Shown here: positions 19,821 through 29,411 of the stretch, one piece after another | Layout: each line of letters begins with the position of its first letter | How positions within the stretch are numbered: position 1 is the first letter of the stretch | Assembly: GCA_900088475.1 (NCBI GenBank) | Contig: FLMG01000368.1 | Span: forward strand, 1 to 64,000 | DNA: 64,000 nucleotides | Source of the DNA: Hyphochytrium catenoides | Taxonomy: Eukaryota; Protista; Hyphochytriomycota | Direction: 5' to 3' | Translations under genes and position numbers: made by a program | Notes under the pieces: generated by a model | What the model was told of the DNA's origin: nothing | The model's database searches: none | The model's input: only the letters and a program-made list of their open reading frames with translations

Positions 19821-21789
19821 TTAGCGCTTGCCCCGGTGCATGCGAAGCCGCTCGTATGCGGCTTTCTCTAAGGCCTCTCTATGGTCTGGGTGAGCTATAT
19901 CAATAAGCGCACGTGCTCTCTCCTGCAAAGATTTTCCAAACAGACTGGCAATTCCATACTCAGTCACGACGTAGTGGACATGATTCTGCGTGGTGGTCAC
20001 AGTGGAGCCATGTTGGAGATATGGCACAATCTTGGACTCTCCTTTTCTCGTGACAGACCCCATGGCGATGATAGGTTTACCGCCCTTTGATAAAGAGGCA
20101 CCGTGAATATAATCAACCTGCGAGTTGTGATGCTTGTTAGTAGGGAGTATGAGAATAAAAAATGACATGGCCGACGGCATCACAGACCTGTCCTCCGACT
20201 CCTGAATACATTCTTACGCCCAAACTGGAGGCGTTGACCTGGCCGGTCAAGTCTATTTCAATGGCTGAGTTGATAGCTGTCATTTTGGAGTGCTGCGAGA
20301 TGGTATTCACGTTGTTCACGTAGGAAATGTCCATCAAGACCACGTCAGGGTTGTTGTCCACAAACTTATAGAGTCGCTTAGAGCCCATAACAAAGCCAGC
20401 CACTATCTTGCCCGTGTGTCGCTCCTTCCGTGAGTTGGTGATGACCCCGTTTTCATAGAGATCAATAACCCCATCTGAGAACAGCTCAGTGTGGATACCC
20501 TATGGCAACAGTCAGCTTTCTTCATTTTTAAAATCAGACAGGGCGGATATTACTGACCAGGTCCTTGTGACTACCTAAAGCAGCTAGAGCAGCGTCAGGA
20601 ATGGCTCCGATGCCCATTTGCAGACATGCTCCGTCCTCTACAAGCTCATTGGCTATGAGCTTGCCGATCTTAGCCTCGACTTCACTGGGAGGATGAGCTG
20701 GATGCTCAAAGATTGGAAAATCTACGGGTACTAGAGCATCAAAGTGGCTCATGTGAACAATGCCTGGTACAAGAGAAGAGTGACCGGGAGGGGAGCCTTT
20801 TAGTCTTTGAACTACATGGAGGGGACAGGCCTCTGTGGCAAAGGAGCCATACACGACGTGGTAGACAGAGATTAGCAGAAAGATCGTGAAGCAACAGCTA
20901 AATAACCTAACAGCGCAATAGAACAGTTAAGGGAGAAAGTGGTATGTAGTCCTACCGTCACCAAATGTTCTTGGCATATGTCGGTTCATCTGGCCCACAA
21001 TAATTCTGGCACTCTTGATGGCTTGCCTTGCACCTAGAAAAGAAGACGAGCCCTAAGCCTTAGCTAGGATTCATACATAAGATCAGGGAATTTACGTACA
21101 GTCCACAGATACGCCAAGCGAGCAATACCCATGTTCATCGGGTGGGCTGACGTGGACCAAAGCGACATCCAGGTCAACGACTCTTTCTTTGAAGAGCCGT
21201 GGCACTTGGCTCAGGAAGCACGGGATGAACTCTGCCCGGCCTTCAGCGATTGCATCTCTCATGTCCTTTCCCGCAATAAAGAGGGAAAGGGGGCGGAAGT
21301 GCCCCTCGTACTCCGACGTGGCGTAAGGCGTGTTCCCCTCTGTGTGTATATGTACTGTCTTGATGTCTGTGAGGTTCTCCCGCTTTGCATGTCTGACCAT
21401 TGCATCCACAAGGACTGATGGAGTGGCACAGCCGCCGTGTATGAAGACCGTCTGCCCGCTCTTCAAAAAGCCCATACAGTCATCCGGCGAGCACATCTTT
21501 GGGCTGTGACCTATCACGCGCGCCATTGGCTCTTGGAATTCTCTGCCAACCTGTAGGAAGTGGTTAAACAACCGTTAGGTGACAGAAGTTAAAAGACGAG
21601 TAATTGCCGAGGGGATTTATAGGAGAGAGCTGTGAGAAAAGCAAATGCAGCCCCTACCTGGGTAGTAGAGTAAGTTCTCCACAGCTTAGGAAAACCATTG
21701 CTATTAACGCCAGCAGATATCATGGCTGGTAATCGCCTCATGGAAGGCCTCATAATAGAGGCCATGCGTTTGCTGGCCCTAGATATCAT
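19821..21789 (-). CDS. Acetyl-CoA hydrolase/CoA-transferase (4-hydroxybutyrate CoA-transferase / ASCT subfamily IB-like), mitochondrial presequence
   Basis: Motifs include VHVSPPDEHGYCSLGVSVD, GACLQMGIGAIPDA, the catalytic-Glu motif GIHTELFSDG, AINSAIEIDLTGQV, SGVGGQVDY and VVTEYGIASLFGK...IAHPDHRE. The N-terminus is Arg/Ser-rich. Confidence 0.92.
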
Positions 21790-21948: not shown

Positions 21949-22593
21949 CTCGAAATCAATTACGCGCCTTCTTGATTTGCTTTCAATGGTTTTGCCGCTC
22001 TGGACGCGTTTCTACTTAGTTCTCAATGTCTCTCTGTCTGCCTGATGGTGACAGAGCACAAAGACAAGTGCGGGAGCGCATTGATTCTTCTCCTCCTCTC
22101 CTCCTTGGCCCTCCCTCCCTCCTCCCTTTTATTACAGAGTTTGAGTATTCTGATCAGCCATGAAATGACACGGAGAGATACAGACTAACTTTGAGACAGA
22201 GAGCGAAGGATCGCAAGACAGAGAGGTTATGAATTTACCAAATTCATAGGGATGCTGGTTAGTAATGGCGCGACAGATAAGAGTACTAGATGGGTAGAAG
22301 TACAAGAAGGAGATGGCTGGGTGGATGGAGACAGAGGCACGGGCCATAGGAGAGGCGGTAGTAATAACAAGTAGAAAAGATTCGTCTCGACTTTGTAACC
22401 ATCCTGCCAGCAGCTCATCAAGGGCAGCCCGTTACCGGTCCCAACCATGCGGATAGATATCATCCCACAAGGGTTATTATATAGATAATGACATGAGACA
22501 GAGCAATTGCGGTTTATCAACCGACACGTGGTACCGGTGACCTTTGGGATTCTTATAGTTCTATAGTTACAGTCCTCTTGATAGGGAACGCCG

Positions 22594-22657
22594 TGGCTTG
22601 GTCAGTGCGACACCGGCTCGGGAAGGAGTCTTTGAGTGCCGAACATCATTGCAGCCA
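22594..22657 (-). promoter_or_regulatory. Eukaryotic type II SECIS element in the TrxR 3'UTR
   Basis: The mRNA-sense sequence is UGGCU-gca-AUGAU-GUUCGGCACU-c-AAA-gaCUC-cuuccc-GAG-cc-GGUGUCGCAC-UGAC-ca-AGCCA. It contains helix I, the AUGA/GA core, a 10-bp helix II with one mismatch, the AAA motif and an apical mini-stem. Confidence 0.88.
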
Positions 22658-22701
22658 TCGGAGCCCATCATGGACAATTGAACTGGATGGATGGACGCCA
22701 C

Positions 22702-22747
22702 GCTCATTCCCAGTAGCCCATCGGCGATGAGCAAGCTGGGAATGAGC
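22702..22747 (-). promoter_or_regulatory. Strong RNA hairpin directly after the TrxR stop codon (SRE-like candidate)
   Basis: GCUCAUUCCCAG and CUGGGAAUGAGC form a perfect 12-bp stem, with an inner GCUCAUC/GAUGGGC stem. It begins 6 nt 3' of the Sec UGA. Confidence 0.6.
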
Positions 22748-24723
<1,976 letters not shown>

Positions 24724-25352: not shown

Positions 25353-26387
25353 CTAGCGAGGAGCGACCTACTTGTGCGATAGTTAGGCATTCCAGCGTCA
25401 AAAGCTGTGGCTGTAGTCATTATCTAGCTGTCCCCATGCAGTGACCCCTGTAGGGCTCGCTGCAGCTATTGTTGCACTTGCTCTTGAACATAGTAGAAGC
25501 GGAGAACACTAATTGATGAGCAGCACTGCTGTCTCAAGAGCCGCCTTATCAATCAAACAAGGTTACCTTTCATCAAGAATGGGATTCTCATCTCCCGCTT
25601 TCTTGGTCATCTCTTTTCAAAATTCATTATGGTGATCATCCCTTTCACTTGAGTAGCAACATGATACCGTGCATAATGGTCAAAGCTGAAATAGAGACAG
25701 AGCCAACTCAAAAGAGTCAACCCGGTGTCCTTGGCAGCCCGACCAATGCTTTACTTGCAGGACTGTGTCATTTTAGCTTCTGCGCGGCTATGCCACTTAA
25801 CGCTCCGCGGTGCCACCTAAGAAGATCGGGTGGGAGAGCTGTTTTAATGCATAGAGGAATCTGCAGAAGGCGGCGCGTAGATGGGCTAAATAACGGCCAT
25901 CGAGTCTTAGGGCTAGGAAGTGTTCTAGTGAGAGCTTAATATGAGGACAGTGCTGTTATACAGAGTTGAGTTCCTATCGAAGAGTGTCCTGAGACGATCC
26001 AATAGCTGAGTGAGCTTCAGTAGGCGGATCTCAACAATCGCGGTTGCCGTCAAGAGCCTTCCTGTCACCTGAGATAAGGTTTGTCAACAGATTGCTCCTC
26101 CTCCTCGCTACATATCTGACCCACACAGCTACCTAGTGCTGCTGCCTCGGACCCGTTGCCAGATGCTGACAGATCTGCAGATTCTGATGCCTTGGTGGGC
26201 TTTCCTTGTTGTATGAGAGGCTAAGGAAGAATCAACCTTCAAGATTATGGAGGAAGAAAGAATAGTGCGCACCTAAGTGCGTACCTGGACCTTTTAGGTA
26301 TTGTTTCGTGGCCTTACCGGCCCATACTGGGATGCGATACCGCACCTTTGGTGGCCCTTGATGGGAAGAGTCATCGTCACATAAACC

Positions 26388-26850
26388 GCTCCCCTTTTTC
26401 TCTCCTCTCTTCGTCTCTCTCTCTTTTTCTCTGTGTCTCTCTCTGTGTCTCTCTCTCTCTCTCTTTCTCTCTCTGTCCTTCTCTCTTTCTCTCTCTCTTT
26501 CTCTCGCTCTCTTTCTCTCGCTCTCTTTCTCTCTCCTCTCTCTCCTTTTCGTTCTCTTCCCTTTCTCCTCCTCTCCCTCTGTCTGCCCGCTCGCTCTTTC
26601 GCTAGTCTCTCTCGTTGTCTCTCCTCCCTAAGGACCTGCATTTCTCTCCCATACACTTCCTCTCCCTTCCTCTTTTTGCCCTTCCTCCCTCTCCTCTCTC
26701 TCTGTGTCTCTCCTACACCAGCTTGCGCTTCCGCACTTGAGCTTCTCTTGCTTAGCCTTGCTCTTCTCTTTCCCGCTCTAGAAGCTCCTCCTGATCCGAC
26801 ATCCAACCCCTCTCTCTCCTCCCTCTGACATCATTCCCTCCTCTCTTCCG
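26388..26850. repeat. About 450-bp CT-rich polypyrimidine/polypurine tract
   Basis: The + strand is almost entirely C/T, upstream of the PI-PLC-like gene. Confidence 0.9.
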
Positions 26851-27014
26851 CCTCAACGCTCAAGCGTCTCTGTCTGCCACGCCACCCGCTCGCCGCCTGA
26901 AGGTCGGCATTGCTCACCTTCTTACCGCTGCGTGGCGCCATCCTCTGCTCTTCTGAGGCGGTGACAGGCATCGGCCTCAAGGAGCAAGAGTCCTCACTCT
27001 TGCGAACACGAAGG

Positions 27015-29411
27015 ATGGCGACTGAGAGCTTTCCACGGCGCAGCGGTTGGAGACTTTTGCTTGCTCTTCTCCCAACCGTGGCCGTCGTCTGCTACACTGC
27101 TTCTATCGTCTCGCGGGATGCTGTTTCCCTTCAAACATCCCCGCAAAGATCTCTGCAAGCTCGTGATGCACTGACTGAAGAGAAGAGAGAAATTGCAGAT
27201 GATTTGGCTGTGTACGCACCCTTTCCCATCACAGAGACTCCCGACACGGTGCCGAAGGGCGTGCAATGCAAGAAGAAGAAATATTGCGATAGGCACAACA
27301 TATGCGCCATCGTCTGCGAAAGAGGGTTAGTCTCTGCCTCAGTTCTCCGCTGTTTATATTAGACAAGGGCTTTGAGAGCGATAAGCTGATTGCTGTGCAC
27401 TTTGTAGATCTGTGAAGATTGACCCATGGCTGGCACATGCGCTGAAGTTCCAGCGCAAGCTCGCTTACAAGGAGAATATCTGCCGAGCACAGCTGCCTGG
27501 CTCTCATAACACTGCCATTGACCTTGCTGATGTAGGAACAAGCTCCGCCACTATCCCTTTCGCGCTGACCTCAGCGCTGAGACTGACAAACCCACCCTGC
27601 CTTGCTTTTCCCCACCTGCGAGTAGGGCTACGGCGTAGAGGACCACGTGTATGATAAGCTTCTGAAGTTCATCTCTTGGGTTGACAAGAACTCCCACGTG
27701 AACACCAATGATCAGGTCAAGAGGCAGGCTCATCGTCTCTTCTTCTCTCTTAATATCTTCTCTATTTGCCTTGCTGCAGTTGCCATCTGACCTTTCCTTT
27801 CCCTCCTGTATCGTCNNNNNNNNNNNNNNNNNNNNNNNNNNNNNNNNNNNNNNCTCTCCCCTCTCTCTCTCTCTCTCTCCACCCCACCCCTCTCTCTCTC
27901 CTTTACGCTCTCTCACAGCTCTCTCGCTCCCGCTCTCTTCCTCTCTCTTTCTTCCTCTCTCTCTCTCCCCTTTGCTCCTTGCTAACTGTTCCCATATCTA
28001 CAGTTCTTCTCATTGACAGACTCGCTGAACATGGGCATTAGATTTGTTGAGCTAGACACGCACTGGGTCAAAGGAGACCTTAGAGTTGCGCACTGCGGCG
28101 GACTCCACTCCAAGGTCAGAGTCTGTGTTCCCAAGGTCTTTCTTCTGCTTCTTCCTCCTATCTTCCACCTTTCCTGTGCGTGTCCACGGGTGCAACCATT
28201 TATCTCTGACAATACTTTGGCCCTACTCTAGCCCTTGAATGCGCTGATTAAGGGGCTGAATGCCTTGGCCAAGCTCTTCCACTATGAGATCCAATGGGAT
28301 ACGGAGACTATCGGCTGTAGCCCCAGCGCTAGCTCTATACCTGCAGATGAGCAACGGACTACCCTCTCTGCCTTTCAAGAGATAATGGAATGGATGCAGA
28401 AGCCAGGTAGGACTTCTGTACAAACGTCACGAAGCAATCTCCTTGTTGTCTTCCCGTCACCGAGGCCCGTCCACATCTCAAGGTGATGCTCGCTCTCCAC
28501 AGAGAACCGTGATGAGTTTCTTATGATCTACTTTGATGATGAGGATGACCTTGTCAAGTGGCACAAGCTCGAGAGGCTCAAGGAACTGATATATCAAGTC
28601 TTTCCTCTGTCAATGATTTTCTCTCCCAGTGTCCACGTAAGTGCAACCCCTTACTGTCCTCGCACCATCGTCTTCATCACCTAAAGGCGTCGTGCTCTCA
28701 CTTTAGGCCAAGAGAGGATGGGCGCCGTTGGAAGATCTCTTGAAAGACGGCATCCGCGTCATGTTTTCCAGCGCTACGGACTATGGAAAGGAGATGGCGG
28801 ATCTTATATTCAGCCGACCGCAGGTCTGCCATTGGAAAGAGCCTAATCTTCCACTCTTCCCCTATCCCAACTGCACCTTCCGCGATGGAACGGTAGCCAA
28901 TAGCGACATTCTACTGCGTCCTACCTCAAGTGAAATACAGATGGGCCCGTTCAACGCTGGGGGCCATCTAGGTCCAAACAGGAACTTGGTGAATGAGAGC
29001 ACTCTGCCAGGGCTGATCAAGTGTAACGTGAATTATCCATCTCCAGACAACGTGACACCGAAACGAATGGAGGCAATGGTCTGGTCTTGGGCAAGAGGCG
29101 AGCCCATAAGCCTCTTCAATACCAACGGGACAGACATCAATGCTGTGTGCCCCTCTCTCTCTGTGAAGGACGGAAGATGGTATGAGATTGACTGCACCCA
29201 GAATGGTAGACCGGCCTGCAGAACAAAGACAGATCCAAATCAGTGGGTTCTTGGGCCAGCTGTGGGGGGAGCTGCGGCGGTCTCTTGTCCTCCCGGGACG
29301 GACTTCACGGCGCCAATCAACGCTTTTCAGAATGCGCAGCTGCAAGCAGCGGCCGGAGATGAGGAGGCTGCTATTGTGTGGTTAAACATAAAAGCTCTGG
29401 GTGTGGAGTGA
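27015..29411 (+). CDS. PI-PLC X-domain/PLC-like phosphodiesterase (Rv2075c-like) with N-terminal signal/anchor and Cys-rich C-terminal domain
   Basis: It has QLPGSHNT, NDQ|FFSLTDSLNMGIRFVELDTHW...RVAHCGG, VWSWARGEP and DGRW...C...RPACR...W...CPPGTDFTAPINAFQN...VWLN. The N-terminal segment is hydrophobic. Confidence 0.82.
27816..27853. other. Assembly gap (N run) inside a CT-rich intron
   Basis: 38 N. Confidence 1.

Follow-up and report, generated by a model that had tools for sequence, protein, structure and literature searches.

A stable stem-loop was found whose first paired base directly follows the stop codon in a large thioredoxin reductase (TrxR) gene of the selenocysteine (Sec) type, with its base 6 nt downstream of the UGA that encodes Sec, in the 64-kb stretch of DNA from a stramenopile-like protist that was analysed here (hereafter the window). 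It is a genuine structure, has no counterpart in its neighbourhood and is locked in position, and like structures of unrelated sequence, which share a G:C-rich base, occupy the corresponding site in the majority of Sec-type TrxR genes of diverse microbial eukaryotes. This proximal stem-loop (PSL) is very probably a selected structural element, and by analogy a role resembling the one which the Sec redefinition element (SRE) plays is plausible. Termination at the Sec UGA yields a TrxR that lacks only Sec-Gly and is inactive, and TrxR truncated at this codon has been reported as harmful in mammals, which makes the role of the element at the penultimate UGA a relevant one.

The thioredoxin reductase gene and its Sec terminus

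The host gene and its terminal codons, the latter read directly from the sequence, were located as follows.

22748-24705, minus strand: multi-exon large thioredoxin reductase gene of about six exons, with the ATG at 24705 and the UAA stop at 22750-22748
22759-22748, minus strand: terminal codons TGC-TGA-GGA-TAA (Cys-Sec-Gly-stop)
22759-22757, minus strand: TGC
22756-22754, minus strand: TGA (Sec)
22753-22751, minus strand: GGA
22750-22748, minus strand: TAA

The exons were searched one by one, not as a joined spliced protein, and Pfam Pyr_redox_2, Pyr_redox and Pyr_redox_dim match separate exons, while exon 1 harbors the CVNVGC redox centre; fold and redox centre are thus those of the large (animal-type) selenoprotein TrxR. 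The best protein matches to the exons reach about 50-63% identity, the enzyme being about 50% identical to the Sec-TrxRs of many eukaryotes, and tblastn revealed that the exons are collinear with a paralog in the same genome. At 22762-22748 the sequence GGA TGC TGA GGA TAA specifies Gly-Cys-Sec-Gly and then a true stop, so that the C-terminus reads GCUG-stop. The gene is a Sec-type large TrxR, and both the selenoprotein identity and the Cys-Sec-Gly-stop ending, which had been proposed in a first-pass annotation of the letters, were borne out on the minus strand by the Pfam domains and by the C-terminus.

The paralog, a second large TrxR (G000:C3930:18041-19747; L004 1342-3048), is intronless, carries an N-terminal presequence-like extension and ends in CGGGKCG (Plasmodium-type) with no Sec, which indicates that two kinds of high-molecular-weight TrxR, one Sec-type and one Cys-type, coexist in the organism. 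Its counterparts in Saprolegnia and Thraustotheca, the nearest named relatives, share 72% and 71% identity with it, which puts the organism in the vicinity of the water moulds. This genome also has an exon of the SelK/SelG family (G000:C1896:158-259, minus strand; L100; 33.6 bits), which is located where a contig ends. A CT-rich microsatellite intron comes after it, and the C-terminus with the Sec, like the 3'UTR of that locus, lies beyond the end of the contig.

As to its surroundings, the TrxR gene is followed downstream, on its own strand, by an intron-split acetyl-CoA hydrolase/transferase (window 19824-21571, minus strand; PF02550 and PF13336), and no convergent gene overlapping the hairpin was found at the locus. 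At about 26300-28000 the window contains extended tracts of (GA)n/(CT)n-like sequence with purine/pyrimidine skew, as well as a stretch of N, which appears as X in the translations of the open reading frames, and strong GC and AT skew was noted at 26001-28000.

The stem-loop at the stop codon

Folding of the region that follows the stop codon gave the following elements.

22702-22747, minus strand: proximal stem-loop (SRE-like), 0 nt after the UAA and 6 nt after the UGA
22747-22736 with 22713-22702, minus strand: outer stem of 12 perfect Watson-Crick pairs
22732-22726 with 22722-22716, minus strand: inner stem of 7 bp, including one G-U pair
22725-22723, minus strand: 3-nt loop closing the inner stem

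The two stems are separated by an internal loop of 3 nt against 2 nt. The hairpin has an MFE of -32.7 kcal/mol in a 66-nt context, with a z of -4.31, and none of 200 dinucleotide shuffles of that context folds as well; moreover, it is kept in a 201-nt fold. Its first paired base is the first base 3' of the UAA, as in a PSL, and the spacer from the UGA to this base is exactly 6 nt (GGAUAA), as in an SRE; the stem lies wholly in the 3'UTR, and not within coding sequence as do the SREs of SEPN1 and SelT. The 12-bp and 7-bp stems at 22702-22747, their start directly after the stop and their distance from the Sec codon had all been put forward in the first-pass annotation, and the coordinates proved exact on the minus strand. 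Its comparison of the 6-nt spacing with that of the SEPN1 SRE agrees with the published position of the latter (PMC3628699).

A neutral or chance inverted repeat without function, for example the remnant of a small palindromic insertion, has to be considered for any isolated palindrome. Against this origin, the hairpin is the sole perfect inverted repeat of at least 10 bp (loop of at most 40 nt) in the whole window, its sequence occurs a single time in the 61 Mb assembly, and it sits exactly at the stop. None of the 34 long-ORF stops of the window bears a comparable compact strong hairpin, and independent sequencing runs returned the hairpin and the SECIS element downstream without any difference.

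The SECIS element and the remaining 3' region

Downstream of the stem-loop, the 3' region on the minus strand is made up of the following parts.

22659-22701, minus strand: 43-nt spacer from the PSL to the SECIS, by coordinates
22658-22587, minus strand: SECIS of type II shape, assigned from its motifs, position and gene context
22649-22646, minus strand: AUGA motif of the SECIS
22633-22631, minus strand: AAA motif of the SECIS
22604-22602, minus strand: 3' UGA motif of the SECIS
22494-22586, minus strand: remaining invariant 3' region, beyond which (from about 22494) a second sample diverges

In its fold, the SECIS has helices I and II with an internal loop between them, then an AAA bulge and an apical mini-stem (CUC/GAG); helix II is paired at 9 of 10 positions, and the motifs are those of the type II form. 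The first-pass annotation had announced a canonical type II SECIS about 100 nt downstream, of which the place, the motifs and the mini-stem were recovered, the AUGA lying 107 nt from the U of the Sec UGA, whereas the Rfam SECIS_1 model matched the element over its full length with 18.4 bits, below its gathering score of 35. Because of this sub-threshold score, the element is called a SECIS from its motifs, its position and the gene in which it lies. The same model gave one match (29.3 bits) and none reaching the threshold among 20 other Sec-TrxR loci, so that it is insensitive for these organisms. In a custom motif scan, a crude instrument that proposed candidates in only 25 of 56 loci, the SECIS of the window scored highest of all. 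The 43-nt spacer showed no predicted structure of its own.

In another sample of the same organism (run X2), 7 substitutions and 3 insertions were located in 22338-22483, and a 5-base insertion at 22947 in the last intron; the exons are identical, and no difference was encountered across 22494-22760, which spans the SECIS and the hairpin. This invariance between samples may be a faint hint of constraint, which would bear on how far the constrained part of the 3'UTR extends.

The closeness of the two elements lends some appeal to the idea that the stem-loop serves as spacer or insulator, in a purely structural way, between the stop and the SECIS and does not act on the ribosomal A site: by compacting the intervening stretch, it could guard the SECIS from being unfolded by a terminating ribosome, whose footprint reaches past the stop, or could set a workable distance between SECIS and a UGA placed at the extreme end of the ORF. 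The short separation seen in the window is in keeping with such a function. Moreover, deletion of the mammalian TR1 and SelK stem-loops left recoding unchanged in the constructs tested, and the stem-loop of SelS was replaceable by other stem-loops (PMC6844570).

Survey of Sec-type TrxR 3' ends

Metagenome contigs were scanned with the C-terminal 130 residues of 34 Sec-TrxRs, which produced 80 loci picked by protein similarity alone, 58 of them ending in C-UGA-G/S/A-stop. The 85 nt after the second stop were folded for 56 non-identical Sec-type TrxR 3' ends, largely of metagenomic origin, and a hairpin with a dG of -13 or lower was counted as stable. In 30 of the 56, pairing begins with the very base that follows the stop, equivalent to the 6-nt spacing; a stable first hairpin starts exactly there in 27 (48%), and one is found at most 6 nt from the stop in 44 (79%), compared with 22-35% in the controls. 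For the exact start, the controls gave the following frequencies.

Dinucleotide shuffles: 15%
Upstream coding windows: 9%
Windows at least 150 nt downstream: 9%
154 other long-ORF stops of the same loci: 12%

The enrichment of exact starts over the pooled shuffle and window controls corresponds to a binomial p of 1.5e-11. After the ends had been grouped into 43 clusters at 70% peptide identity, an exact start at the stop was counted in 22 clusters and a start no more than 6 nt away in 34 (p about 1e-10). The 85-nt post-stop windows have a mean MFE z of -3.5, with 66% below -2, and the most stable local structure within 200 nt on either side covers the post-stop spot in 45 of 57 ends.

The surveyed hairpins have a median length of 48 nt (range 23 to 83 nt) and a median dG of -24 kcal/mol. 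Stem sequences are unrelated between groups and loops are not conserved, while pairs 1-3 of the stems are 77-89% G:C, compared with about 48% for pairs 4-7. The spacer or insulator function accommodates loops and stems that are free to vary in sequence; however, nothing obliges a spacer to start right at the first post-stop base, as about half of the hairpins do (79% within 6 nt), nor would it call for a G:C clamp at the base that faces the ribosome, and hairpins so diverse in length set no fixed distance. We therefore consider this function unlikely, yet deserving of real weight.

Some other role in the mRNA, such as stability, localisation, protein binding or 3' end formation, with a merely coincidental link to Sec-type TrxR, would find a precedent in primate SelS, where the equivalent stem also hides a splice site, which illustrates that such stems can serve other ends. 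Nevertheless, the enrichment concerns Sec-type TrxR stops and not the other stops of the same loci or of the window, and position-locking to the stop is hard to explain in this manner. In addition, a compact hairpin abutting the stop was seen in none of 8 non-Sec TrxR ends, a small control set which includes the paralog of this genome; one of these ends (L072) has a stable hairpin that starts 5 nt after its stop. A role of this kind is accordingly judged improbable. Taken together, the locked position, the G:C-rich base, the free sequence and the lack of such hairpins in the sampled non-Sec ends argue for selection on the structure itself.

The base after the second stop is a purine in 51 of 57 Sec-TrxR loci and the next one is C in 47 of 57 (22747-22746 in the window), so that, besides the stem, the stop is followed by a primary-sequence context of R-C. 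No other conserved flanking motif was detected in the Sec-TrxR set. Acanthamoeba and Balamuthia, both without the hairpin, also have G-C right after the stop.

Three bases past the Sec UGA, 14 of the 57 non-identical Sec-TrxR ends have UGA once more as their terminator (UGA-GGN-UGA; loci L033, L035, L040, L044, L048, L050, L052, L054, L057, L060, L061, L065, L066/L067, L068 and L073), and to judge from these sequences identical codons 3 nt apart would be read differently. Many of them have a hairpin whose start lies 1-6 nt past the second UGA and which often contains GGCAACUG or GGCAGCUG.

Relatives, covariation and absences

The closest peptide match of the window (L059) possesses a 12-bp hairpin of different sequence and sits in a well-supported clade of 11 members, all with the hairpin. 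Four transcripts chosen by protein similarity (P0064, P0151, P0191 and P0205), some of them with poly(A), all carry it, and the hairpin sequences of these nearest relatives are unrelated. Prymnesium parvum has the hairpin, and Diacronema has it weakly. The absence of the element from relatives had been set beforehand as a test, and its outcome does not speak against the stem-loop, since stop-adjacent hairpins are present in most Sec-TrxR 3' ends sampled.

Acanthamoeba, Balamuthia, Salpingoeca, a mussel and Diplonema have either no such hairpin or a weak one, which implies that Sec-TrxR can be made without it. In a poorly resolved tree of the C-terminal peptides, the absences are scattered, and presence and absence are not clustered beyond chance.

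Conservation here means a recurrent structure (34 of 43 clusters), and covariation derives only from one haptophyte-like subgroup and not from orthologues of the lineage studied. In this alignable subgroup of six sequences, 6 of 13 pairs are changed on both sides and 94.6% of the cells are paired; among 500 shuffles, none reaches the paired percentage or the covariation score, and 6 reach the count of double-changed pairs. Such compensatory changes, together with the recurrence of the hairpin across the clusters, weigh against a chance repeat, in whose favour stands the lack of the hairpin in several named lineages, and we regard that origin as extremely improbable.

Several other analyses were discarded. 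Sequence-wide MAFFT alignments of 22 and of 8 hairpins misaligned the arms, the sequences being unrelated, and only the subgroup of six could be aligned. A reading of the hairpin as a sequence family was abandoned, as a covariance model trained on those six retrieved nothing but the sequences from which it had been made, which defines the hairpin as a structure at a position and not as a sequence family. An energy profile in which every offset in turn was forced to close a helix lacked position specificity, since the hairpin can be enclosed by pairs upstream of it. A count of perfect helices with G-U allowed was noisy, the peak at +7 to +9 being accompanied by another within coding sequence, at -86.

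Possible action of the stem-loop

Ribosome footprints and known stimulators of frameshifting and readthrough place a helix that starts 6 nt past the A-site codon at the mRNA entrance of the ribosome, where the stability of the base of the stem matters most. The hairpin is very probably a selected cis-element of the TrxR mRNA, abutting the stop with its base 6 nt after the Sec UGA, and once this UGA occupies the A site, the stem would have its base at that entrance. A stable helix there may slow the ribosome or alter events in the A site, and in this way the hairpin would tune the delivery of Sec-tRNA, via the SECIS 43 nt further on, relative to termination by release factor, in either direction; for instance, it could disfavour release-factor action while the SECIS complex delivers the Sec-tRNA. 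Such an action would be the one thought to operate for the SEPN1 SRE and the SelS proximal stem-loop. Since termination at the UGA leaves an inactive enzyme, pressure for a decoding aid is plausible. The non-conserved loops fit a mechanical role better than a sequence-specific one, and the G:C clamp fits a mechanical role as well. The exact start at the first base of the UTR could in part reflect freedom from coding constraint and not a spacing requirement. That the hairpin acts on the step at which UGA and stop are decoded is held with slightly less than even confidence.

A bolder proposal is that the G:C-clamped, stop-adjacent hairpin might be an ancient third cis-element of Sec decoding in TrxR, which would serve as a position ruler: a UGA 6 nt upstream of the stem would be read as Sec, and a stop abutting the stem would bring termination. 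In mammalian TR1, the insertion of Sec succeeds only close to its natural place at the C-terminus. If true, the ruler would explain both this restriction and how mRNAs ending in UGA-GGN-UGA tell their two UGAs apart; the idea is speculative and rather doubtful.

Comparison with known stem-loops near Sec codons

In bacteria, the SECIS is a hairpin immediately 3' of the UGA, with conserved apical-loop features that are bound by SelB. The TrxR stem-loop resembles it in being a hairpin 3' of the UGA and differs in that its loops are not conserved and a separate eukaryotic SECIS is present.

The closest parallel is offered by human mRNAs, for which Cockman et al. (2019) predicted a PSL right after the stop in 6 of 8 C-terminal-Sec selenoproteins, TR1 included (PMC6844570). 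The first-pass annotation had considered the arrangement undescribed for TrxR, a view which cannot be upheld, since that study discusses the TR1 PSL (PMC6844570). The arrangement has therefore been noted before for mammalian TrxR, and the comparative evidence across microbial eukaryotes appears to be new; within a literature of incomplete coverage, no paper on the recurrence of the PSL across microbial eukaryotes or on the G:C clamp was found. In the same study, the TR1 and SelK stem-loops are stated to be without known function, and deletion of the mammalian TR1 stem-loop did not raise Sec insertion, that of SelK having no effect (PMC6844570). The human PSLs are structure predictions, and the PSL of the window is much stronger (19 bp) and occurs in a stramenopile-like protist. 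What the present work adds to the human PSL work is recurrence across microbial eukaryote TrxR genes shown statistically, together with a G:C-clamped base.

The stem-loop of SelS, like that of TrxR, lies at the start of the 3'UTR of an mRNA in which Sec is penultimate, and its effect on recoding is position-dependent (SL1/PSL; PMC3628699). It was called a second functional SRE by Bubenik et al. (2013) (PMC3628699). It was stimulatory in one assay (PMC3628699) and inhibitory in another, with a separate SPUR motif (PMC6844570). Unlike in TrxR, the activity of SelS needs this short conserved SPUR just after the stem, and in primates a splice site is concealed by the SelS stem.

The mammalian results for stem-loops of this kind are mixed, with positive, negative and null outcomes (PMC3628699, PMC6844570), and the mammalian PSLs next to C-terminal Sec codons amount to predictions with contradictory or null assays. 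The comparative evidence makes the question of their function testable, and the survey supplies natural variants in length, in spacing (0 to 6 nt) and in the second stop (UAA or UGA), with which the element at a penultimate UGA can be probed.

The SRE of SEPN1 (SELENON) is likewise a stable stem-loop that begins 6 nt 3' of the Sec UGA (Howard et al. 2005, 2007), and it lies in coding sequence (PMC3628699). The ribosome must therefore translate through the SEPN1 stem, whereas the TrxR stem is all 3'UTR and need not be fully unwound. SRE function has been demonstrated in SEPN1, and it is by structure and position that the TrxR stem is SRE-like.
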